Positions 1,487 to 60,189 of a stretch of DNA of 64,000 nt are shown here, in pieces. A program made the position numbers and the translations under genes. Position 1 is the first letter of the stretch. Each line of letters begins with the position of its first letter. The stretch spans positions 10,230,001 through 10,294,000 of the forward strand of contig JAQFVV010000009.1 of the NCBI GenBank assembly GCA_028023455.1. Direction: 5' to 3'. Source of the stretch: Epiperipatus broadwayi (lineage: Eukaryota > Animalia > Onychophora). The notes beneath the pieces were generated by a model. It searched no databases and was not told the DNA's origin. It worked only from the letters and a program-made list of their open reading frames with translations.

Positions 1487-3075
1487 TAGTTCAGCATTCA
1501 CAATATGAGGCTTATCAAAATGTTTATTTCCCTCAGTTTTTCACCTATTAATTTTAAGTTAATATTAGATAAAATAAGAGGTTTCCACATAACTGGAATA
1601 CATTGTGCTTCATCAGCCATATTTAAATGAGTAGGTTTCTTTAATATTTCAATTGACTCTCTCATAGTTCTTAAATCATATCTTTCCAAATTAGCAAGTA
1701 TTTTTGTATTGTCAAAATCAGGTTTGTGACCAATTTCTCAAAAATGGGAAGTAAAAACTGATGTGCTAATTTTTTGATTAAAAGCATTTCTATGTTTCTT
1801 AATTCTGACATTTATTCATCTATTAGACTGACTCACATAGCTTCTTGAGCACTGCAAACATGGAATTTTGTAAACTCCTTGGTGTTCCAAAAATATTCTG
1901 TCTTTAGATTTACATAAAAAATCACCAATTTTTTTGCCAGTAGAAAAAGTAGTCTTTATATTAAAACAAGATAGTCTTCTACTGATTTTATTAGTAACCC
2001 CTTTAATATAAAGTAAAATTACTCTACTAAAAGAGGAATTGTCAATTCTATCCTTTTTTTTCTTTTTAGTATTAATATTATGTAAAACCTTACATATGAT
2101 GTTTTTATTACAATTATTAGAAAGTAGAATATTTTTGTAAGTTCTATTTCTTGAGTAAGATGTTCTTTATCAGATAAATTATAAGCTTTAGTCAAAAGAT
2201 TTTTTGCTACAGAAAAAAATTGTGCAGGATGTTGATGAGAATTAAACAGATCGCTTTCTTTTCTAGATGTTTTAATTGCAAGAAAATGTGATCAAACATT
2301 ATCATTACCATTTTACAGAAAATCCACCCATACAAACAGATATCTTAATTTTAATTCTCATCATCATCCTGCACAAATTTTTTCTGTAGCAAAAAATCTT
2401 TTGACTAGAGCTTATAATTTATCTGATAAAGAACAACTTACTCAAGAAATAGAATTTACAAAAAATATTCTCTTTTCTAATAATTATAATAAAAACATCA
2501 TATGTAAGGCTTTACATAACATTAATACTAAAAAGAAAAAAGAGGATAGAATTGACAATTCCTCTTCTAATAGAGTAATTTTACCTTATATTAAAGGGGT
2601 TACTGATAAAATCAGTAGAAGACTATCTTGTTTTAATATAAAGACTACTTTTTCTACTGGCAAAAAAATTGGTGATTTTTTTATATAAACCTAAAGACAG
2701 AATATTTTTGGAACACCAAGGAGTTTATGAAATTCCATGTTTGCAGTGCTCAAGAAGCTATGTGGGTCAGTCTAATAGATGAATAAATGTCAGAATTAAG
2801 AAACATAGAAATGCTTTTAATAAAAAAAATAACACATCAGTTTTTACTTCCCATTTTTTAGAAATTGGTCACAAATCAGATTTTGACAATACAAAAATAT
2901 TTGCTAATTTGGAAAGATATGATTTAAGAACCATGAGAGAGTCAATTGAAATATTAAAGAGACCTATTGGTTTAAATAGGGCTGATGAATATCTAATATT
3001 AACTTAAAATTAATAGGTAAAAAAATTGAGGGAAATAAACATTTTGATAAGCCTTATATTGTGAATGCTGAACTA
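1487..3075. mobile_element. Penelope-like element (PLE) 3' portion in head-to-head inverted arrangement
   Basis: Arms 1487-2246 and 2350-3075 are reverse complements (about 90% by eye) around a 103-bp spacer. The plus strand encodes a PLE RT thumb and GIY-YIG endonuclease. Confidence 0.9.
2257..3000 (+). pseudogene. PLE RT C-terminus plus GIY-YIG endonuclease (frameshifted)
   Basis: LSFLDVLI...FYRKSTHTNRYLNFNSHHHP, ILPYIKGVTDKISRRL, then GVYEIPCLQCSRSYVGQSNR (2720-2767) and RESIEI. Includes ORF 2401..2688; ORF 1498..1689 is the mirror copy. Confidence 0.88.
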
Positions 3076-13060: not shown

Positions 13061-13621
13061 ATACTGAAGAGGGTAAGAAGGCATCATTGAAGAAGGCCTT
13101 TATATATTAATATAATAAAATGTTTGTTGCTAAATTACTTATTTAGCTATTATTCATTTGTTTTTATACAAAGAGGGGAAATCTTATAATTACTTCAATT
13201 TTATGATAATGGTACAATAATGTACATATTTATTATTCAATGCTTTTGTAATTGATTCAATCTTTCATGTTATGTTTTAGGAATGATATTTTATTGCTAT
13301 AAAAATATTTTAGTTTACTGACTGCTGTTGAATATGAAATTTTATGTAGCTTACCCATACATAGATTCATGGAAGAATTAAAAGCCGTTGTAACTGAACT
13401 AATTTCTACTGACATGTTTTTTTGGAAAACCATTAAATTTTATTAGCCAGTTTTATTTCATGATCATACAGAAACATTAAATCAATCATATCATTTAATA
13501 AATGCTAGTGATTAATGTTAATTGCTACAGCAGATTTATCACATTCTAATAATTAATATTATATTAATACTATTGTTATATATAGAGCCCGCAAAACAAG
13601 CTCTTAACAAGCTTTGAGAAT

Positions 13622-13676
13622 ATCCTCAACCCCAGACTGGTTTCTGCATCTAGCATCATCAGTGAGGTGCCAGGAT
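13622..13676 (-). ncRNA. Type I hammerhead ribozyme fold
   Basis: Minus strand: ATCCT GGC ACCTCA CTGATGA TGC TAGAT GCA GAAA CCAG TC / TGGGGT TG AGGAT. Stem I, stem II and core are present; the stem III palindrome is decayed (ACCAGT, versus ACCGGT in the sister copy). Confidence 0.75.
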
Positions 13677-14021
13677 ATTCATTAGATTTAAAATACTAGG
13701 ACAAGTCCAGCACTTTATCTAATGTATAACTATTGAGAAGAAAATCTGAAATTTTCAGACATTCATATGTCTAAAAATCCAGCTATCTAACTCAAATAGC
13801 CATATGGGACTGAAATAAGTTCAGATACACCATATATTAGTAGCTTTAGCAATATAAAATCACCAAAGCCTTAATAGCAAAAAATAAAATAATAAAAAAA
13901 TATCAAGTCAGATGTCACATGACCTAATTTTAATAAAGCTCATATTTACAAATGTTATATATGGATGTCTGAAAATTTCAGATTTTCTTATCAATAGTTA
14001 GTGCTGGGCTTATCCTAGTAT

Positions 14022-14076
14022 TTCCTGGTACCTCTCTAACAACGCTAGATGCAGAAACCGGTCTGGGGTTGAGGAT
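14022..14076 (+). ncRNA. Decayed hammerhead copy (core CTAACAA)
   Basis: CCTCT CTAACAA CGC TAGAT GCA GAAA CCGG TC TGGGG: two G>A changes in CTGACGA, with the ACCGGT palindrome intact. Confidence 0.65.
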
Positions 14077-14334
14077 ATTCTCAAAGCTTGTTAAGAGCTT
14101 GTTTTGTGGGCTCTATATATAATATTTGTAAATAAGAGTTTTATTAAAATTAGGTCATGTGACATCTGACTTGGTTTTTTTTTTTTTTATCATTATATTA
14201 ATACTATAAGTTGTTTTCTTAATTATAATTCTTTTGTTAATAGGAAGAGTTTTATTCTACAATCACTATAATTTAATTCAATATCTTATTAATACATTGT
14301 ACAGGCTTACACCTGCATTTATATATGTAATATA

Positions 14335-15019: not shown

Positions 15020-17935
15020 GTGAAATGGTTTACATATTAGTCCCCTTTTCCTAAATCCTAGGTTCAAACAGAGTTTTATCTACATTTGAAGTGCCAAACG
15101 AACTCAGAATTTTCACTAACGAATTCCCAATCGATTTAACTAGCTACTAGTGTTGGTTGATAAGTAAACATTTAACTATTCCAAATTACAGAATTGACAA
15201 TTTCACAAAGTATTTAGCTTTAATTAAAACTTTAAGAAAGAGAATCTGATAGATTTTGTAAAAAAAAAAAAAAAAAAAAAGATTGTGCATTGATATCAAA
15301 ATGATATCTATTTGTAAAGAAGTGAGTTAAGTCCTAAACTTAAAACTTCATAAAGAGAGATTTGGAGCTACTGCGTGAACGTTGAAAAAAATTGCTGTGA
15401 AATGATTATTTTTTTAAATATATAATTGCTTCCTTGTTTTTATAATCAACAGATCTCTTTTTTTATGTTACCATGGCTGAAAGAGTAATTTCATTTGAGA
15501 AAGTGATTTTTTTTAAAAAAAAAAAGATACATCTATTTTATTAATTTAAGAGAATTCATTTCAAGCAATCAAAAAACTGTTTAATAAATTATGCGTTAAA
15601 GTTGTCAAATCTTTTGTTAGAAAAAAAAAAAACACATTACAATATTAATAATTGTGTGTGTGTGTTTTTAAAAAGGTGTCTTTTTTAAATTATCTGTAAA
15701 ATATTAATCATTAATTTAAAATTTATGCAGTTTTCTTGTTAACAAGAAGTAAAAAAAAAGAGTGGAGTGGCAAGTATTATGAAATGAGATTTCTAGCTCT
15801 TGAACTTTCCTGTAATAATTAATAATATATTTTAAAAGAAAATAAATAATCACATGACTATTAAAAGATGAAGTGTATTTGAATATTTGTTTTAACACAA
15901 ACATTAATACCTTTTAAACATAAACTGTTTACCTTTGTTTATATTAAATTTAATGCATTAAAAAATAGTAGGATAAAAAAAAAATCGAAGATATTTTCTA
16001 CAAGTAATTGTTTTAATTAAATACTCCGACGTATAAAAAGCAGTGCTGATAGTATAAACTCAGCTAAGGGTTTCATGATACATTTTCCTCATATCACTGA
16101 AGAATTCCAAGCAAGTCAAGATTTTTTCAGTAGCTTTTCTTAGTTATGCATCTTAATGATATGAGACTTTCTATATTATTTCTATCTCTAAATGTCAAGC
16201 GTTGTTACCCGAGAGGTCAGCACAGCCGCCATGCAAGCAAGCAGTTGGTTGCAGACGGTAGTTGCGGGTTCGCCTACCTGCCGATGCTCTGACATATGAA
16301 AAAAAAAAGATATTGGAGTGAATTATGTTGAGAGAGAGATGGTATGATTTGTCAAAGTCAACAGCTGACTCAAAAAATTGATTACCATAATAGAAGTAGT
16401 AATAGTAGGAGTAATAGTAGTAGTAGAAGTAATAGTAGCAGCAGCAGTAGTAGCAGTATAATTCAATTTATTCATAAATAAACAGCTCAAAAGAGGCCAC
16501 AAACATTTACAAAGTAGTACATGTCTGTATTATAAAATTATGTAGATATGTTTAAAATCACTATTTATAAGAACGTAAAATTGATTTTATTTTGTCATTG
16601 AATTGTGTATAGTTTAAAGATAAAATATCAATATCAGCAAACTTTTTATTATACTCCAGTTGCAATATATGCACTGATGAATTAATAATGTCTCAACATA
16701 GATAAATAAAACAATTCGTGATATCTAGAATTATAAGTTAGAATCCTAATCAAAATTTTTGTAATTGCATATTTTAATGATACAGTACCATGCACTAATT
16801 TAAATAAAAACGGCATGGCTATTTGTCTTGTATTTTTTGTAATTTACTTATATTTGATTGATTATATGGATTTCAAACAATAGAACCATAATGCATAAAG
16901 TGCCATTAAATATATGAAATAGTAACCTATATATTTCTAATTTAAATTGAATATTTGATCTCAAAATCATGCCCATAATTTTAAGAGATTTATTAATCAT
17001 TATTTGAATATAATCATTAAATGTATAACAAATTTGTGAAAATAATACCCAAACCTTTCTACTTAAAAATTATGGCAATTCTGTTTCCATTAATACAATA
17101 TGACCATTATTAACTATTGTTTTTTTTTTTTGTATAAGATACTGAATTGCATTTTTTTAATGTTTATTTGCATATTATTGACATGGCACTAATTACAAAA
17201 AGCATTAATATAATTTTGCAATACTTTATGATCATTTATATGTTTGATCTCCAAAAAGAACTTAATATTATCTGCATAACATAATATATTTTTGTCCAAG
17301 CTATGATAGAAGCCAGATCAGAAGTGTAAATGTCAAAAAGAATGTGACTTAAAATACTTCCTTGGAGTATTCTACACCCGTAAGTAAGCATAAAAGAAGA
17401 TTCTCCATTAATATGCACATAATTCTTTCTATTAATAAGAAACAACTTTAAAATTTTTTAAATATTAATTAATAATTCAATTTTATCCACTTTTATTAGT
17501 AAAATTTTATGATGTATCTTATCAAAAGCTTTAGACAAATTAAAATAAACATCATCAAGTTGTCTTTGAAAATAAATAACTTGTGCTATAACATCTGTTA
17601 TGTGCAGCAAATTTGTTTTTGCAGATCTTGCTGGTAAAAAAACCATGTATAAATGAAGGAATAATATTTTTTAATTGATGTATAATCCTATTATAAATTG
17701 ATTCTTCTAATATTTTAACACAAATTGGCAATAAAGAAATAGGCCTACAATTAGATAAATCTGATTTCCCCCCTAAAATTATAAAATGGAACTATTTTTC
17801 CAGTTTTCTAACAATCAGGAAAAACAGATGATAAACAGAGCAAAACTCTCCATACAGTATTGCCACCTGTGCTAAACAGAGTAATCAATGGATGCCAGAA
17901 GGCTTGTGCATAAAATCCCTATCTAATGCCTACTC

Positions 17936-17994
17936 ATCCAATATCCCCAGACTAGTTTCTGGCTTGTGGCCTTCGTCAGTGAGGAGCTTTGGAT
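17936..17994 (-). ncRNA. Type I hammerhead ribozyme fold
   Basis: Minus strand CCTCA CTGACGA A GGC CACAA GCC A GAAA CTAG TC / TGGGG with outer helix ATCCAA/TTGGAT; predicted cleavage between 17950 and 17949. Confidence 0.8.
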
Positions 17995-18805
17995 CTGAGA
18001 GCACTGCATCTAGATCTTAGGATCTAATGCAACCCTCTAGCAACCACCTTTTATCTCTACTTAACTACAAAACTATGAGAATAAAATTGAAAACACAAAA
18101 AATATTTTCAATCTAAGCTCAATAGCTTATATAGTCATATGGGTCTGAACTCAGTTCAGCACCCATACATTTTGGTGTCTTTGGCTCTTTTACAACCATA
18201 GCCACCACTATCCTATTAGGCAGGATTGGTGTTAAACCACTAAGCATCACATGATCACATTTCCTATACTAGCACATTAATTGTTGATAAATAGAGCAAA
18301 ACTCTCCATACGGTGTTGCCTCCTGTGCTAAATAGAGTAATCAATGGATGCCAGAAGGCTTGTGCATAAAATCCCTATCTAATGCCTACTCATCCAATAT
18401 CCCCAGACTAGTAGGCATTAGATAGGGATTTTATGCACAAGCCTTCTGGCATCCATTGATTACTCTGTTTAGCACAGGTGGCAATACTGTATGGAGAGTT
18501 TTGCTCTGTTTATCAATAATTAATGTGCTAGTATAGGAAATGTGATCATGTGATGCTTAGTGGTTTAACACCAATCCTGCCTAATAGGATAGTGGTGGCT
18601 ATGGTTGTAAAAGAGCCAAAGACACCAAAATGTATGGGTGCTGAACTGAGTTCAGACCCATATGACTATATAAGCTATTGAGCTTAGATTGAAAATATTT
18701 TTTGTGTTTTCAATTTCATTCTCATAGTTTTGTAGTTAAGTAGAGATAAAAGGTGGTTACTAGAGGGTTGCATTAGATCCTAAGATCTAGATGCAGTGCT
18801 CTCAG

Positions 18806-18864
18806 ATCCAAAGTTCCTCACTGATGAAGGCCACAAGCCAGAAACTAGTCTGGGGATATTGGAT
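18806..18864 (+). ncRNA. Type I hammerhead ribozyme fold
   Basis: ATCCAA AGT TCCTCA CTGATGA AGGC CACAA GCCA GAAA CTAG TC / TGGGGA TA TTGGAT; predicted cleavage after 18850. Confidence 0.82.
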
Positions 18865-19262
18865 GAGTAGGCATTAGATAGGGATTTTATGCACAAGCCT
18901 TCTGGCATCCATTGATTACTCTGTTTAGCACAGGTGGCAATACTGTATGGAGAGTTTTGCTCTGTTTATCAACAATTAATGTGCTAGTATAGGAAATGTG
19001 ATCATGTGATGCTTAGTGGTTTAACACCAATCCTGCCTAATAGGATAGTGGTGGCTATGGTTGTAAAAGAGCCAAAGACACCAAAATGTATGGGTGCTGA
19101 ACTGAGTTCAGACCCATATGACTATATAAGCTATTGAGCTTAGATTGAAAATATTTTTTGTGTTTTCAATTTCATTCTCATAGTTTTGTAGTTAAGTAGA
19201 GATAAAAGGTGGTTACTAGACGATTGCATTAGATCCTAAGATCTATGATGCAGTGCTCTCAG

Positions 19263-19321
19263 ATCCAAAGTTCCTCACTGACGAAGGCCACAAGCCAGAA
19301 ACTAGTCTGGGGATATTGGAT
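19263..19321 (+). ncRNA. Type I hammerhead ribozyme fold
   Basis: Same fold with core CTGACGA; predicted cleavage after 19307. Confidence 0.82.
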
Positions 19322-19719
19322 GAGTAGGCATTAGATAGGGATTTTATGCACAAGCCTTCTGGCATCCATTGATTACTCTGTTTAGCACAGGTGGCAATAC
19401 TGTATGGAGAGTTTTGCTCTGTTTATCAACAATTAATGTGCTAGTATAGGAAATGTGATCATGTGATGCTTAGTGGTTTAACACCAATCCTGCCTAATAG
19501 GATAGTGGTGGCTATGGTTGTAAAAGAGCCAAAGACACCAAAATGTATGGGTGCTGAACTGAGTTCAGACCCATATGACTATATAAGCTATTGAGCTTAG
19601 ATTGAAAATATTTTTTGTGTTTTCAATTTCATTCTCATAGTTTTGTAGTTAAGTAGAGATAAAAGGTGGTTACTAGACGATTGCATTAGATCCTAAGATC
19701 TATGATGCAGTGCTCTCAG

Positions 19720-19778
19720 ATCCAAAGTTCCTCACTGACGAAGGCCACAAGCCAGAAACTAGTCTGGGGATATTGGAT
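19720..19778 (+). ncRNA. Type I hammerhead ribozyme fold
   Basis: Same fold with core CTGACGA; predicted cleavage after 19764. Confidence 0.82.
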
Positions 19779-20639
19779 GAGTAGGCATTAGATAGGGATT
19801 TTATGCACAAGCCTTCTGGCATCCATTGATTACTCTGTTTAGCACAGGTGGCAATACTGTATGGAGAGTTTTGCTCTGTTTATCAACAATTAATGTGCTA
19901 GTATAGAAAATGTGATCATGTGATGCTTAGTGAAAAACAGATGTTTTTAGTGACAAATTAAATACATATACTAAAGTAGAAACTAAAAGCTCATTGCAAC
20001 TTTTATAAATAAATATAGGTATATCATCATGTTCTATACTTCTCTTATTTTTTAAAGATTTAGATGCCATTAAAATCTTATTCACATTCAGACTAATTAT
20101 ACTTATTAAATTACCATTATCTATAAGATTATTAGAAAAATGGTAATTATGTGAATACACATTATTATGAATTATTTAACATGAGAAATATCTCATAAAA
20201 TCATCTGACTTAATATGTTGCTTCTCCATTTCTAACTTTAAAATGACCTTTCATGATATTCTAAAATTGCCTTGGATTGTTACTAATGTTATTCTGTATG
20301 TTTTTTATATACAAAAGAAAATCTTGTTTTTCCACTTGTTTTTATTAAAAAGCTACAATTTTTCAAGTTATTTAAAAACATTCTACTCCATATTTTTTGA
20401 ATAAATTATAAATTCACTGCTTTCTCTTTATACATAAGTTTGTTTGAAAACCATTTAGGATATTTAGCTGATTTAACATCTTTCATTGGAATAAATCTAT
20501 TTATTACATCAAATAACATTTTTTGAGATATTTCTGCTGCTATTGAAGCATCCTTACTGCTATAAACTTTCTCCCAGTTTATATCTTTAATTGCTCCATA
20601 CAAACCAAAATAATCACCTCTAGCATATTTTTTTTTAGC

Positions 20640-20806
20640 ATAAAAATCTAAATTTAATTATTTTGATGTCTAATGCAAAATGATGATAATCTTCAGTCAC
20701 TAGAAGATATGACTGAATTCATAAAAAATCTAAATTTAATTATTTTGATGTCTAATGCAAAATAATGATAATCTTCAGTCACTAGAAGATATGACTGAAT
20801 TCATAA
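20640..20806. repeat. 82-bp tandem duplication inside the LINE endonuclease region
   Basis: AAAAATCTAAATTTAATTATTTTGATGTC...GACTGAATTCATAAA repeated with an 82-bp period. Confidence 0.9.
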
Positions 20807-22123
20807 ATTTGTAATTATTAAATCCAAGTATATTCATAATTATTGTATATATCATTGACATGCTTTTGATCTAAAAACTTAAGTAATTCCATCAAGCCAT
20901 TAAATTTGGCATTATTTTGACAAACATTGTTTCCATAATATGCAATGTTCAAATCTCCCACAATTAATACTTTATGCTTATATAAAATCAGAAATGACTC
21001 TAATGCTTTTAAATTTTATTTCAAACATTTTTGTGAAACATTAGATGGAATGTACACACTTCCAATAATAATTTAGAATTATTTAATTCAAATTCAATCC
21101 ATACTGCATGAAATAAGAAACATGGAACATGTATATACTTATAGGTAACCTATTTCCTAAATACAACTAATATATCTCTACCTCTGGCAGGTATAGATAC
21201 TGGTTATCACTTCTATAAACACTATATCTCTCATCTATCAAATCTTCATTATATTTATATTCCTTTAGCCATGTCTCTGTTAATCAAATAATGTCATATT
21301 TTTCAGTTAAAATTTTATGTTTAATTTTACATAACTTTGTCCACAATCCTCTCACATTTTGTAAGTAAATATTTAATAGTTTTCAATTCATCAATACTAA
21401 TTTGTTCAGAAATGTATAGATTCTAACTAATATCTTATCATAACCAATTTCTGTGTCATTTACCTCTTTGGTAACATCATTTTCATTCATAGAGTTTGAT
21501 TTATGTAATCTTTCATAAAAAGGAACTAGTATCGAATCATTCATAAAAACGAAGTAGTATCGAATCACATGGGCAAAGCTCTGGGTTTATTATGTGTTCT
21601 ACTTACTGTTTATCCACTGAAATGTTATTTTCAGGTGGCATTTTATAACAAACAATTGAAGTTTTAAGTTTATCCATTAGATGTTTAATAATATCTTTCT
21701 CATTCATTGCTACATCAATTTTTGTGAGAAATTTTTTTTTAATAAATTGGTTTTACTGCCAAAATATTATGATTTTTTTGAATTCCTATTATGGCTATTT
21801 TATTTGCATTTTTTCTATTGGCTTTCTTTTTATGTGTTACTGAAATAAAAACATCATTACTATCCTTAATTTCTTCATCCTGTACCATTAATTTAGTATA
21901 TATGTCAGAATTATTTTGCTGTATGCTTTTAATTTTACTATCACTTTTATTATTATTACTCTTATTACTATCAAATGATGTCACTATCTCAGCCCAGGTC
22001 TGAGTACTATTTTTCTCATTTTTCTTTTTGAAATTATTAATATCAATATCAGGATTAACATTATATTTATAATATTTTCTATCTACTTCAGAAGAATCCA
22101 CTTTAGCTTTTTTTTCTTCTTCA

Positions 22124-25600: not shown

Positions 25601-27660
25601 AGGACTATATCCAATAGCAATAGTGCCATTTGATAAAAAAACAACAGCCATATCAAATCTCAATAACCTTTGAACCATCTCCACAGACCCATTAGGAATT
25701 AAATTATTGAAAAAGGTAGTCAAAGATAAAATATAAATATACATACTATCTCTGATATTAAACATGCAGTATGAAAAGAAAGGATCCTCCACCATACTGT
25801 CTGCACTTGTATTTAAAATGATACAAAGTGAAGTGCAATAAGATAAAAGTATGCCCTAATTGCAGTTTAACTGGATATACAGGCGACATTTGATTCTGTT
25901 GCAATATATGACTTAATGAATATGCTTGTGAATGCAGTCATTCCACCCACCCTACTATACATCATTGCAAATCTATTACTCAACTGAGAGATACACCGCA
26001 TATTTCATGACAGAAACACAAAATCATTTATTCCCACACAATCAATTTCCCAAGGATCCCTGCTCAGTGGATTGCTGTTTATTCTATATATAAATCAACT
26101 CTTAAAACAGATTGAAAATGAGTTACCAGGAATATTAATACCAAGAAATGCAAGCATATTCCATGTATTGCATGCATGGAAAAATGATTGTTTTTAACAT
26201 CGCATAAAGAAATGCCAGTGTTAGAAAAAATACTACAAAATTACACAGATATACACAAACTACAATTCAATCTAAGCAAAACATCATCATGGTTCATCTA
26301 TACTAAAAAATTCTACACAGCTCAAGAAAAACCTACTCCATTTCTCAGATTTCGATTTTACCTGGGAGCACATGAAATGAGACAAGTACTGCAAAACAAG
26401 CTCAAACAGAAAGCAACAAACATAGCTATGTCTTTATCAAATGCATACTTATCTGTATATTAAAAAGTGCACCTATTTACCATACTCATAACAACAAGAA
26501 TTTTATATTATTCATCTATTGTTAATTTTACAAAAAAATTTACAGCAGCCATGTCAATAGCAAAATACTATGTAGTAGGAAAACTAGCCATTTCAATCAA
26601 ACAACTTAGCCAACCAACTATACAGAATGGTCTGGAGGTCCACACAGTACATGAGTTCTACACAAAAAAAACAATAAACCTACTGGCAAAGATTACTGCA
26701 TGGTTTCAGCAACTGCAACGTTTCCTCAACATAATGCCTACAGATTGTCTCCCATCCACATATTGATATCTAGTATTTTTAGCACCTTCAACACAAATCA
26801 ATGTCAGAACTACAACATTTACATTTATTAGTGAATAGCATACTGGCTGACATACAAATTGATCAACTCAACCACAAAAAAATAGACCTTTAGTCTAATG
26901 CTGGGAGTAAACAACAAGCAACTTCTTAAAATCAACAGAAAATGGTCAATGGAATAGAAGTTCTTCAACTTCTTGATCAAGTTAAACTTATTTGCACTAC
27001 TAACATCCTAATTTTTATGATACCATCATCTTTATAGGTTAATAGAAACATTCTGAAACCTATGCTATGTTGCTGAAGAAACACAACAACACATATTTTG
27101 CAATCATACAGCACTAAATACTATGTGAACAATATGCTAAATCAATATAGAACAAGACAAACTATGCAGTAGTAACAGATTTTACACACAGGCAGACAAC
27201 CCCTACAGCACAAGCAGCAATCTTTAGACCCCATGCTTGATGCACACGATATATATTTAGCCTGAGTAATAACACCAGATGGCATCCGACATTTTACAAC
27301 AAGCTACAACCAATAAGGAGCAGAGATGCAAAGATTACACATTCAGACATTTTTTGTGGCCACCTGGTCACTATTAAAATTACAAGCTAATTTATAAGAG
27401 CATGCAATAACTAGCCATTATATAAGCACAGCCTATTCAAACAAAACTAACAATGAACAAGAAACTAAAAGGATAATATGAAATATGGATACTTACACAG
27501 CTGAACAAAATGAATAATACTTTTGACCAATAAAAAAAGTCAATAACAGAACATTAATGAGTGATTAAAGGGGGGACTCTAACTAACAACAAGATCATAA
27601 CTAACAACAATAAAAATTAAACAATGATGGCTAGACAAAAATATAACGTAAAAAAATCTA
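22660..27660 (+). mobile_element. L1/Tx1-like non-LTR retrotransposon, near full length, heavily decayed
   Basis: ORF1 remnant (VMEPFGKVI, then YPCKQ-KGHVIAQCPK zinc knuckle ~23440-23525); EN motifs LNVRGINS (~24300), MGNFN, SDH; RT motifs LDIQATFDSV (~25870) and SQGSLLSGLLFILYINQL (~26050). Boundaries approximate. Confidence 0.78.
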
Positions 27661-52673: not shown

Positions 52674-52941
52674 GCAAAACTCTCCATACAGTAGCGCCAC
52701 TCAATGCAAGCCAGAGTAATCAATTGTTGCAGGAAGATTTGTGCATAAAATCCCTATCTAGTGCCTAAGTTACAAGCTAGAAACTAGTCTGGAATTATTG
52801 GGTGAGTGCGGTACAAACTAGAAACTAGTCTGGAATTGTTGGGCGAGTAGGCACTAGATATGGATTTTATGCACAAACCTTTCTACATCCATTGATTATT
52901 CTGGCTTGCACTGAATGGCGCTAATATATGGAGAGTTTTGC
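52674..52941. mobile_element. Fold-back remnant of the 457-bp hammerhead family
   Basis: Arms 52674-52767 and 52848-52941 share GCAAAACTCTCCATA, GAGTAATCAAT and TGTGCATAAAATCCCTATCTA with the 17.8-19.9 kb unit. The loop contains AGAAACTAGTCTGG twice (52779 and 52820). Confidence 0.85.
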
Positions 52942-55326: not shown

Positions 55327-58300
55327 GTTTGTGGTGAAGGCTTTTTTCTGCCAGATACCTTTTCTTTTTATACCAGAAGATATATCTTTCTCATAGACCT
55401 TCTCTACTATACCCAGACCTTCATTTCATTATTGATCCATTTCTTCATTCCCCCATATTGTAGGTCCCTCTGAAACCAAACTGCACTAGTCTTCAAACCC
55501 CACTATCCTGAACTGCTTTAGGAAACTTGGTTACTTTCACCATTCAATCTCTCCTATTCCACCTGCTGGTGTTGCAATTCTGATATCCAACAATATCCCA
55601 TTTGAATCTTTTCAAAATTAATTATATAAACCAACATATGATTGTCGCTACCTTATTCCATAGAGAATTATTCATTTGTTAATTAATCCAGCAAATTAAT
55701 ATCACACTTACCTCAAACTCCTACCCAACCACATTCCTGGGAGATTTCAACATTTTTTATTAAGAATTTACCACAAATATATCCATAATCTAAATATGAA
55801 TTTCATGTGTGGTGAAGGCTTCTTTCTGCCAGATACCCTTTTCCTTTTATACTAGAAGATATATCTTTCTCATAGACCTTCTCTACTATACCCAGACCTT
55901 CATTTCATTATTGATCCATTTCTTCAACCCATTCCTCTTAGATCACCTTGAGTTATCTCTCAATATTTTCCTGGACCTCAATCATGCTCCATTCTAAATC
56001 TAAACTATACCACTAGAATTCTTCTTAAATTTTCATCCCCTGAAGCAATTCTCTTTAAGGCATATATTTTATTTCCATAAGATAAAAAAGTCTTACTCTA
56101 CCACAAACAGAGGCCTGGTTCACTTTCATCCAAATTTTAATATCAATCATCTCATATTACACTTCACGTAACAAATGATCTTCAATGCTCCTAATGGATC
56201 TTGAAATGATGTCAGCACCCTCAAAAATCTACCCCTAAACTCAATTTCCATTGATTCCATCTTAAATCTAAAACCTCAGTACAAAAGCAAACAGATTATT
56301 CTTGTGGAATATCTATCCACCAAAAAATCAAAGATCTACTTGAGTCACCCCATAATTGGTCCAGAGGCTACATTAGGTGGACCCTGGGCCATAGAGATAA
56401 GCAAGCCACTCCATCATTCATCATTGTAAGGAACTGGCTGTATACCAGATCAAACATGATTCAAGAGATTTTTTACCTATTTCAGAATAAGTTCTCCACC
56501 TTTCTGCCAGAACTCAGACAAGACACTCCAATTGATTCATCAACCACAGACCATGGTATAACTCGGGGATATTCTTGCAAAATTAAGCTCCATGCCAATA
56601 AAATCCATCCAGGTCTCCATGTGATTCCTTGATTTCTTCTATTACATTTGTCCAACTTCTCCATACCAATCATATATAATCTAATCAACCACATTTCTTC
56701 TGGTATCTTAGACATTGGTGGGCTCTACTTCATAGCGATGATGCCTTTCCTCAAGTGCAACACTATTCTTTTGTCACTGGAAAATCTTAGGCCATCTCTA
56801 TGACTCCACTGATGGTCAAAATTATCAAATTGGTCATTAAAGATATCCCGATATCAATTTGTGGCAAATTCACTGCAGGTGTTATTAATCTTTTTAAAAA
56901 TCATCATTGATCATATCAAGAAAGCCAGACAGTTGAGATCAGTGATAATCCAACTTGACATAACTGCAGCCTTCAAGTCCATTCAGTTTAATTATCTCAT
57001 GTCACTTGGTGAGCATGACCTTCTCCTTGGAATCATCAACATAATCAAAAACCTCTATAATTGAGAAATCTTCATTTCCCTCAATGGGAAAACTATCCAT
57101 TCTATTTACTACTATGGCCTCCATCCCTCATTCTTACTCAGCACCCTGTTTTAGTACCTATCTTAATCCCTTGCTCCTTCAAATCAAGAAGTCTCTTTCT
57201 GGCATCTACATCACCTTCATGGATAACTTGGACATGTTTCTGCCTTCAAGAAACCTAATTCTTCAGCTCCTCCTAATACTAAAAGAATTTTTAGATCAAT
57301 CCTGCCTGCAATTTAATATGACAAAGTTGTCTGCCTGGAAATTAGCCTCAGGTAACATCATTGTCTCTCTATTCTCAGCAAAGCCTCAACATTTCTTAGG
57401 CTATCCAATATTTTTAATTCATGCACTACCATGAGGAGAACAATCCAAGATAAACTGTTCTAATCCTCACACAGAATTACCTCTGCCCTTTCCAAGGTGT
57501 ATATGTCCATGTTTACCAAGTTCTCCCTCATCAATATCCTGTTTTCCCTAAAAATATCATACTTTACTCTTATTATTGATTTCACCAAAGCATTCATTAA
57601 AAATATTCATAGAATGCATAGAATGTGTACCAGTCTGATCTGGGGAGGAAAGGCTACAACAATTAACTTGAGAAACCTCCAAAAACATACCAAATTTAAT
57701 AATCTTCTCCTTCATTCCATAGACACCTTTCAATTTCAACATACTTACAACACCATTAATAGAATTTTCTTACAATATCCTAATGCCCTACCCTTTATTG
57801 AGACTTCCTACTGACAAACCCCTTCCTTCATCTCTCATATCCCATATCGCAAAGTTTACAACCATCCCGAATAAATCCTCTTTGCAGAAAATTATTTTTG
57901 GGAAGCCTACCATATTATAACCCCTAATGTTTCTCCTGGCCCCACTTTCCTAAAGATTAACAACCATATTCTATTCAAAAAATTTAAATGATGGTTCCTC
58001 AAACCCAAATTTTTTGACTTTTTTTTAAAAATTAACCTTAATACCCTTCCCACAAATCACTTCCTTGTACACTATTGAGGTTTCTTGGACATTGATTCAA
58101 TTTGCTTTTTGTCTCTCAGAGAGGATGAAACCTCAGCCCACCTTCTTTGTCACTGCCTCCTCCTACAACCATACAGAGATTTTTCAGCCTCTATTTCAAT
58201 AAATAAAAATCGTACTCTTTCAACTCTCATCGATAGCATTCTTCATGGCACCGTCCCTGGGATGCACTCAACAACCTTCATCCTTTTCTCACTATGGTTC

Positions 58301-58912: not shown

Positions 58913-60189
58913 TCATTACAGTGTTTCAAGTTTAGGAACTATTTATATATCATTTGAAATGATTATATTCAATCATTATTATAATGGAAATACTTGAAAA
59001 ATATATCTATTATTATTGAGTGTTCACTATAATAGGGATAGGAGGGGTGACACATGTAAAATGCATATACATTAAATAAAGAAAAGTATAGCGTACATTT
59101 AATCTGCATTTGAAAGAGCAAATTAATCCAGCTGAAATCTTTCTATTTGTGCTATCTGCTATATTTATTCATCTAAGATGAATAATTAATAAATACCAAA
59201 TAATGTCAAATAAATATTCAAATTAATTTTTAGCTATTAGACATTCATAGAGAGAAGTTTGTATCAGAACTATCTCATCATCAAAAAATACTGTCAGCAC
59301 ATATAAGCCTATATATCTCTCTTTACCAATTCTCTCCAATTTTGATTGTACTTTGTAAGAATGCTGAGCAAATTTAAATTGGCCACCTTTTTATAATGCC
59401 ATTTCACATATTATGTGTTCAAAAAGTAATTATATTGGTTTTAAAATTTGAAGTTGCTTGAAAATTCAAACCATTCGCTTGAATAGCATGAGTAAAAGTG
59501 GCTGCTGGGATGATAATTTCTTTTGCTGATGACAACCAATATTTAGAAACTGGTCTGAGAATGTGTTTGGCAGTTCTACTCACATGACACTGATTACTTA
59601 TGTTTATGTGGATGTTTCACAAATAAAGTAGATCATTTTATAGGAATAAATTTTATTGAAAAAGTTTAACATAATATGAAATTATATTATTAAAAGTATT
59701 ACAATAGTGTTAATTAAGTGCTTCACATTTTATAGATGTTTTAAAAATGGTATTTAATTTAAAATGCTAAAGTTTTTCTTGTATTCATATAATGTATTTA
59801 TTTTATTAATAAAAGAAAATTTCTACTATGAACTTTTAATGAATTAAATTATTTTAAATTAAAAAATGTTATCATTTAATTCTCAATGCTATCAAACTAA
59901 ATATAGTAAAATGTCTATTAATTATGCAGTGCTAAATAATAAAATAGTCATATAGTTTATGTCTGGTAGTTATGTGATGTTCAAATGTCCAAGCAACAGA
60001 TTAAATACAATTATTTTAAGATTTCAATCAGGCTAAATTAGTGAATCATCTAACTGTTAGTAGGTTTGAGGGCATCTAATTAGCTAAAGAATAAAACAAT
60101 GATGCAGAACACTAAAACCATCACTATCCAGTTTAATAAATATAAATACAGAAAATAATGATAATTACAAATACAATTAGCAGTATAAT

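Follow-up and report, generated by a model that had tools for sequence, protein, structure and literature searches.

Retrozymes lacking long terminal repeats (non-LTR retrozymes) were described from animal genomes by Cervera and de la Pena (2020; PMC7229834) as tandemly arranged, non-coding units that measure a few hundred bp and contain a type I hammerhead each; the repeats span 150-450 bp. Li, Clavereau and Pollet (2026; bioRxiv 10.64898/2026.07.22.740005), who reported retrozyme consensus lengths of 51-972 bp, argued that the vertebrate retrozymes represent Penelope-like element (PLE) sequences that lack autonomy. The present study concerns a hammerhead-bearing element at positions 17831-19931 of a stretch of 64,000 nucleotides from the genome of the onychophoran Epiperipatus broadwayi (assembly GCA_028023455.1, contig JAQFVV010000009.1, positions 10,230,001 to 10,294,000 of the forward strand), which is referred to in its full length as the window. 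We consider it likely that this element is a high-copy, non-coding and non-autonomous retrozyme insertion, mobilised in trans by the reverse transcriptase (RT)/GIY-YIG protein of a PLE.

PLEs themselves insert in a characteristic way. Craig et al. (2021; PMC8557442) described insertions composed of partial tandems, to which a 5'-truncated copy in inverted orientation is added at the 5' side, and of a tail of 30-40 bp that is often one-sided. For Poseidon of Anolis, Frangieh et al. (2024; PMC11167929) reported that the purified PLE protein cleaves and extends both DNA strands in vitro, that an AC-rich stem-loop, situated ~90 nt downstream of the position at which the hammerhead cuts, contains two adjacent internal sites from which reverse transcription begins, and that the tail is the sequence between these two starts.

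The Epiperipatus element shares with the retrozymes of Cervera and de la Pena (2020) a tandem arrangement of non-coding units, each of which measures a few hundred bp and contains a type I hammerhead, a GC content under the reported upper limit of 45-50%, target-site duplications (TSDs) of more than 4 bp, a high copy number and the occurrence of PLEs in the same genome. It differs from them in that head-to-head arms and a one-sided tail are the rule (the word “inverted” occurs 0 times in their description) and in that helix II of its hammerhead is closed by A.A and the motif is missed by the Rfam model. Furthermore, both circular and linear RNAs have been shown for their retrozymes, whereas those of the element in the window are putative. 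With PLEs (PMC8557442; Frangieh et al., 2024) it has in common the partial tandems with an inverted 5'-truncated copy, the tail at one end, the AT-rich targets and the apparent use of both target strands. As in Poseidon, two adjacent internal sites with an AC-rich motif at them, here putative RT starts, are located downstream of the hammerhead. Unlike PLEs, it has no open reading frame (ORF), its unit measures 457 nt instead of about 3 kb and its tail 40-55 nt instead of 30-40 nt. Our conclusion is the same as that of Li et al. (2026), i.e., non-autonomous PLE sequences, although they based it on co-occurrence and on similarity of pseudo-long terminal repeats (pLTRs) in vertebrates and we base it on insertion anatomy. 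The unit length falls inside their range; a preliminary description of the window, prepared from the letters of the sequence, had regarded 457 nt as unusually long and the family as perhaps undescribed, a view that the published ranges do not bear out.

A single head-to-head insertion

Tandem Repeats Finder detected a period of 457 bp with 3.3 copies and 99% matches at 18410-19932. The complete element measures 2101 bp, which corresponds to 4.6 monomers (2101/457), and is non-coding, since its longest ORF does not exceed 43 amino acids. The preliminary description, which had reported about 4.6 copies of a non-coding 457-nt monomer at 17831-19931, was accurate in these respects, even to the nucleotide in its limits: the insert is bounded exactly by two 12-bp copies of GAAAAACAGATG (17819-17830 and 19932-19943), for which 0.02 would be expected by chance in the window. 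Its view of the element as a single direct concatemer has to be abandoned, as the inverted arm had been overlooked. A blast map of the window revealed 1.27 minus-oriented monomers that are followed, head to head, by 3.33 plus-oriented monomers. When the monomer is numbered with C17 of the hammerhead as position 1, the left arm consists, on the minus strand, of monomer positions 1-122 (17829-17950) and a complete unit 1-457 (17951-18406). Repeat analysis showed the two arms to be 98% complementary (17829-18390 versus 18410-18971), and the sign of the GC skew reverses at the arm junction (18410-18412). The GC content of the element (38-39%) is higher than that of its flanks (22-25%).

The insertion is situated within an older interspersed repeat, which measures at least 1 kb, includes both flanks (17300-17819 and 19944-20460) and is present in several hundred copies with 84-88% identity. 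In at least 14 paralogues of this repeat, the matches to the left and the right flank lie 11-12 nt apart, i.e., they are separated by one copy of the target. These paralogous empty sites show that the inverted and the direct units arrived as one insertion and that the target was genuinely duplicated to give the 12-bp repeat; the element in the window thus results from a single insertion event. A search for an allelic empty site found no copy of the flanks with at least 99% identity elsewhere in the assembly.

The units of the right arm are not all equally related. Units 2 and 3 (18850-19306 and 19307-19763) are 100% identical and differ at monomer positions 372, 374, and 397 from unit 1, the left arm and 49 other monomers, none of which has these three private changes. 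Their identity suggests that one unit was recently duplicated in place, and the private changes that they share point to either such a duplication or a heterogeneous template.

Insertion anatomy of the dispersed family

The hammerhead pattern occurred 101,068 times (50,421 + 50,647) in the 5.6-Gb genome, compared to 13 times (7 + 6) for a reversed control. All 30 loci that were fetched around the first motif matches turned out to be copies of the 457-nt monomer (73-100% identity), while a search with the monomer itself yielded 705 candidate places, 40 of which were scored and found to be 92-100% alike. The anatomy of 50 complete insertions was surveyed. Forty-four were two-armed, all with the minus-then-plus, head-to-head orientation and none with the plus-then-minus, tail-to-tail one, so that both 3' ends, with respect to the ribozyme strand, face outward (44 to 0); the other six were single-armed. 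The outer ends form two clusters, at monomer positions 105-134 (mostly 115-124) and 160-179, and 40 of the 44 two-armed insertions pair one short end (~120) with one long end (~160-178; p = 1.7e-8). In the same number, a tail of 40-55 nt occurs at one end only, the long end being on the left in 20 cases and on the right in 20. Exact TSDs of 7-15 bp accompany 39 of the 44, while a displaced control gave mostly none. The inner junctions are variable: 17 show an overlap of 1-16 nt, 2 are blunt and 25 contain 1-30 nt of filler. Arm length is unrelated to the type of end (p = 0.27). Together with the paralogous empty sites, the TSDs substantiate the earlier proposal of a mobile non-coding hammerhead retroelement instead of a plain satellite; copies devoid of TSDs, which the preliminary description had named as the sign of a satellite, are not the rule in the survey.

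Copies of GTTTAWCAMCAAT, the 3' half of which is AC-rich, are located at 18964-18976 and 19019-19031. The short-end cluster and the long ends near 175 each fall on one of these copies, whereas those at 160-169 are located slightly upstream of the second. We infer from this position that the two regions served as RT start sites. The insertion anatomy as a whole, i.e., inverted arms, one-sided tail, two start regions and TSDs, supports the connection with PLEs, which had already been suspected from the sequence of the window.

A mechanism like that of PLEs probably produced this anatomy. The PLE protein would bind a multi-unit plus-sense RNA downstream of the predicted hammerhead cut, at a distance of ~120-175 nt, and its endonuclease would cut both strands of an AT-rich target with a stagger of 11-13 bp. 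Each freed 3' end would then prime cDNA synthesis at one of the two internal start regions (monomer ~120 and ~160-178), after which the two cDNAs would run inward over at least one unit, become truncated at random at their 5' ends and be joined by microhomology or filler. The outcome would be two outward-pointing arms, a tail of 40-55 nt at one end and a target duplication. By analogy with other retrozymes, the hammerhead probably trims the transcripts to 457-nt units that could be ligated into circles, a process that need not belong to the insertion step. Tentatively, the rule of one short and one long end might even reflect a mechanical coupling of the two primings, in which a dimeric Penelope protein would have its active sites at the adjacent start regions of one RNA, each protomer cutting one DNA strand and copying the same multimeric or circular template inward. 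If true, the family would document, in a natural setting, the Penelope insertion mechanism, which is still unsolved, and would prove directly by its anatomy that animal retrozymes use it.

In our reading, the element is a non-autonomous, Penelope-dependent retrozyme of a known kind and ordinary for a PLE-rich, invertebrate-like genome. Its significance lies in the fact that inverted arms, a tail and TSDs of this type are absent from Cervera and de la Pena (2020) and from the 2026 preprint, in which the link is mainly made by co-occurrence and sequence similarity. A full Penelope insertion signature in a non-coding hammerhead repeat therefore provides an independent line of evidence for the link between retrozymes and PLEs. 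A young family of ~100,000 motif copies could also be used to map RT start sites, junction repair and target choice, and could reveal if mobility depends on the ribozyme and on circular RNA.

The role of circular RNA is the point on which a different explanation has to be taken most seriously. The 457-nt RNA may be obligatorily self-cleaved and ligated into a circle, the tandem units then arising from an RT that travels around its template several times. Related animal retrozymes are indeed expressed as circular RNAs (PMC7229834), and multi-unit arms persist despite constant 5' truncation, which would be easier to understand if unit-length circles regenerated multimers. The plus strand of the monomer is predicted to fold very stably and to be largely paired (-148.7 kcal/mol, z = -4.8, 0 out of 100 shuffles as good), more so than the minus strand (-108.5 kcal/mol, z = -2.5), and all further hairpins listed in the preliminary description are part of its minimum-free-energy structure; this predicted stability is compatible with a structured retrozyme RNA but is no proof of circles. 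Variant 422T occurs in all three units of the right arm and in only 1 of 49 other monomers, while the left arm has C, a further point in favor of this explanation. However, the three private changes of units 2 and 3 are missing from unit 1 of the same arm, which does not fit one circle copied three times. In addition, the insertions end at internal positions (~120 and ~160-178) and not at the predicted ribozyme cut, so that no role of the cut in priming is visible. For a PLE, the insertion of hammerhead mutants was normal in vitro, with unprocessed multimeric RNA as the main substrate (PMC11167929); since cleavage was dispensable there, a circle is not a necessary step. Two other observations are neutral. 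Monomers within an arm differ on average by 13.5 positions per pair and those of different loci by 15.4, mostly through private changes, and these similar values do not discriminate between a rolling circle and a linear multimer. The sequence was matched by 15 sequencing runs from 9 organisms, all in the form of contigs of uncertain library type; in four of these runs, thousands of contigs with 85-100% similarity occurred, and their joints that step back by 455-456 represent either tandem copies or circles. Such contigs display neither molecule ends nor strand and carry no information on expression. On balance, an obligatory circle seems possible but rather doubtful.

The anatomy leaves far less room for a foldback-type DNA transposon, in which long terminal inverted repeats composed of tandem subrepeats would be moved by a transposase and the hammerhead would be incidental. 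Head-to-head arms with a TSD of ~9-13 bp are superficially similar to such a structure, but its termini should be equivalent, whereas here 40-55 extra nt occur at one end, on either side, in 40 out of 44 insertions. Arm lengths that are unrelated, a variable inner junction with microhomology or filler, the six single-armed insertions, a TSD that varies in length from 7 to 15 bp and 3' ends that always point outward relative to the ribozyme strand make this explanation very improbable. Even less credible is a plain satellite that grew by unequal crossing-over and underwent a local inversion here: the identity of units 2 and 3 with their private changes makes at least one in-place duplication likely, and an enrichment of multimeric retrozyme arrays near centromeres and telomeres has been noted (bioRxiv 10.64898/2026.07.22.740005), but this explanation is contradicted by the short, dispersed insertions of the family, which number tens of thousands and have TSDs and fixed ends, by the empty sites that mark the copy in the window as an insertion, and by the recurrence of the inverted architecture in 44 out of 50 copies.

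Table 1. Features of the probable retrozyme insertion and their positions in the window.
Feature	Position	Strand	Remarks
Target-site duplication, left copy, 12 bp GAAAAACAGATG	17819..17830	.	exact match pair; flanks 11-12 nt apart in paralogues
Left arm, 1.27 monomers	17831..18412	-	outer end at monomer ~121-122 (short, tailless); inner end in ACTAGT of the next unit
Hammerhead core of left arm, CUGACGA ... GAAACUAGUC, C17 at 17950	17950..17979	-	regex match
Head-to-head junction, 3-nt AGT common to both arms (microhomology)	18410..18412	.	
Right arm, 3.33 monomers	18410..19931	+	5'-truncated start at monomer 17; outer end ~168 (long)
Hammerhead domain, unit 1, core CUGAUGA, C17 at 18850	18800..18868	+	distal and proximal helix I, helix II, GAAA, helix III
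Putative RT start region 1, GTTTATCAACAAT	18964..18976	+	family ends at monomer ~105-134; motif once per unit
Putative RT start region 2, GTTTAACACCAAT, 11/13 match to region 1	19019..19031	+	long ends at 160-179
Hammerhead domain, unit 2, core CUGACGA, C17 at 19307	19257..19325	+	
Hammerhead domain, unit 3, core CUGACGA, C17 at 19764	19714..19782	+	motif match
Tail, extra ~47 nt = monomer 122-168	19885..19931	+	right end only
Target-site duplication, right copy	19932..19943	.	

Hammerhead motif and Penelope-like genes

The plus strand contains the motif CTGAYGA-AGGCCACAAGCCA-GAAA-CTAGTC at a spacing of 457 nt, with C17 as its last base at 18850, 19307, and 19764 (Table 1), precisely where the preliminary description had predicted the cleavages of a type I hammerhead. 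The topology is indeed that of type I, with helix I open and helices II and III closed, and helix I is, as had also been noted, bipartite (UCCUCA/UGGGGA and AUCCAA/UUGGAU, separated by a small internal loop). Helix II is formed by GGC/GCC with the loop CACAA and has 3 bp, or 4 bp in the variants with a U10.1-A11.1 pair, while helix III consists of 2 bp inside the palindrome ACUAGU and a 2-nt palindromic loop. The units in the window hold every core position (C3 U4 G5 A6 N7 G8 A9, G12 A13 A14, A15.1-U16.1, H17). Among 85 non-identical copies of the family, each core base is retained in 72-85, and N7 varies freely (C 51, U 34). A descriptor composed of the core, a helix II of at least 3 bp, the A15.1-U16.1 pair and at least 5 of the 6 pairs of helix I matched 1 out of 20,000 shuffled monomers.

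A weak helix III with a small palindromic loop is the usual design of metazoan type I hammerheads, for which activity in dimeric form is assumed (Cervera and de la Pena, 2014; PMC4209133). The motif studied here agrees with the hammerheads of that study in its 6-bp helix I, short helix II, 2-bp helix III with a 2-nt palindromic loop and expected dimer action. The same authors also describe an extra or unpaired base on the 5' side of helix II, as well as pairs of motifs on opposite strands 100-700 bp apart. In comparison to their hammerheads, the putative ribozyme studied here is unusual in that A.A closes its helix II on both sides. A short helix III that ends in a 2-nt palindromic loop suggests that cleavage should be most efficient in paired units. 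RNAcofold of two hammerhead domains did not produce an ACUAGU duplex, a result that carries no weight because nearest-neighbour folding cannot model the hammerhead core.

Apparently intact PLE genes, which could supply a helper, are plentiful in the genome. More than 21,000 candidates for PLE RTs and more than 10,000 for GIY-YIG domains were found, including many PLE ORFs of 800-901 amino acids that are 96-98% alike and in which the YVDD and GVY...YIG motifs are readable by eye; a Pfam hmmscan of these ORFs gave no match.

Several results weigh against a PLE-dependent hammerhead retrozyme. The first group concerns the ribozyme. The Rfam model Hammerhead_1 (RF00163) did not report the motif, neither at its gathering threshold nor at E<=10, whether 2.6 kb or 81 nt were scanned, so that a scan with the type I model, recommended as a check in the preliminary description, turned out negative; the Rfam scans returned only spurious matches to miRNA hairpins, on the palindromic arm junction. 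The same model assigns 34-40 bits to a different hammerhead family in the same genome. The miss is likely due to the A.A at 10.1/11.1, a mismatch that closes helix II in most copies (U-A or A-U in some) and that is in itself unfavorable. Covariation, moreover, rests essentially on one pair of helix II, 10.2-11.2, which is G-C in 69, A-U in 9 and intermediate in 6 of the 85 family copies; variants such as AAC/GUU do occur in the genome-wide list of motifs. Finally, the genomic copies decay freely, with G8 changed to A at a CpG in 12 out of 85, and constraint is consequently visible only between subfamilies; the family is too young for further compensatory changes. Taking this together, we read the motif, from its sequence, as that of a genuine but off-model hammerhead.

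The second group concerns the helper. Twenty GIY-YIG loci (L071-L090), which cover the 3' halves of the ORFs, contained neither similarity to the monomer nor a CUGANGA hammerhead; PLE hammerheads sit at the ORF starts. Within the same scope, no autonomous PLE with a matching hammerhead or 3' region and no pLTR similarity, the criterion of Li et al. (2026), was found.

Some of these PLE loci have peculiarities of their own. Motifs of the form ATGACTA...GAAAC occur ~300-410 nt past the Penelope GIY-YIG stops of four of them (L085 ~2091, L089 ~2086, L088 ~2096, and L079 ~2215) and may, judged by their sequence, be hammerheads with an A3:U8 core variant. The Penelope 3' region of L080 contains, downstream of its GIY-YIG stop (~1850-1925), an inserted GC-rich and tRNA-like stretch, which may represent a short interspersed nuclear element (SINE) derived from a tRNA. 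The window itself contains degenerate head-to-head Penelope GIY-YIG fragments along with fragments of another transposon protein, at 1621-1920 (minus strand) and 2720-2986 (plus strand), and also at 26152-26556 and 57153-57649.

Other hammerhead repeats were encountered as well. An old and short head-to-head copy of the same superfamily (52674-52941 of the window; 80-84% identity) has two arms that both end near monomer position 111. A second hammerhead repeat at 13568-14194, with the core CTGATGATGCTAGATGCAGAAACCAGTC on the minus strand (13635-13662), has inverted arms (13568-13678 versus 14020-14130) that are 89% complementary; the preliminary description had listed it as a family of ~379 nt. 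Another family, which was recovered in loci L031-L040 (e.g., L038 605-2418 and L039 654-2467), consists of retrozyme-like units of ~425 bp with the canonical hammerhead CTGAAGAGACCCATAGGTCGAAACCGGTC, recognized by RF00163 with 32-40 bits, and its arrays are likewise arranged minus-then-plus, head to head. An isolated hammerhead-like motif, CTGATGACAACCAATATTTAGAAACTGGTC, at 59526-59555 of the window did not match the 457-nt monomer. Approximately 700 bp downstream of the insertion, at 20642-20807, the window contains an 82-bp tandem duplication (2.0 copies, 98% matches).

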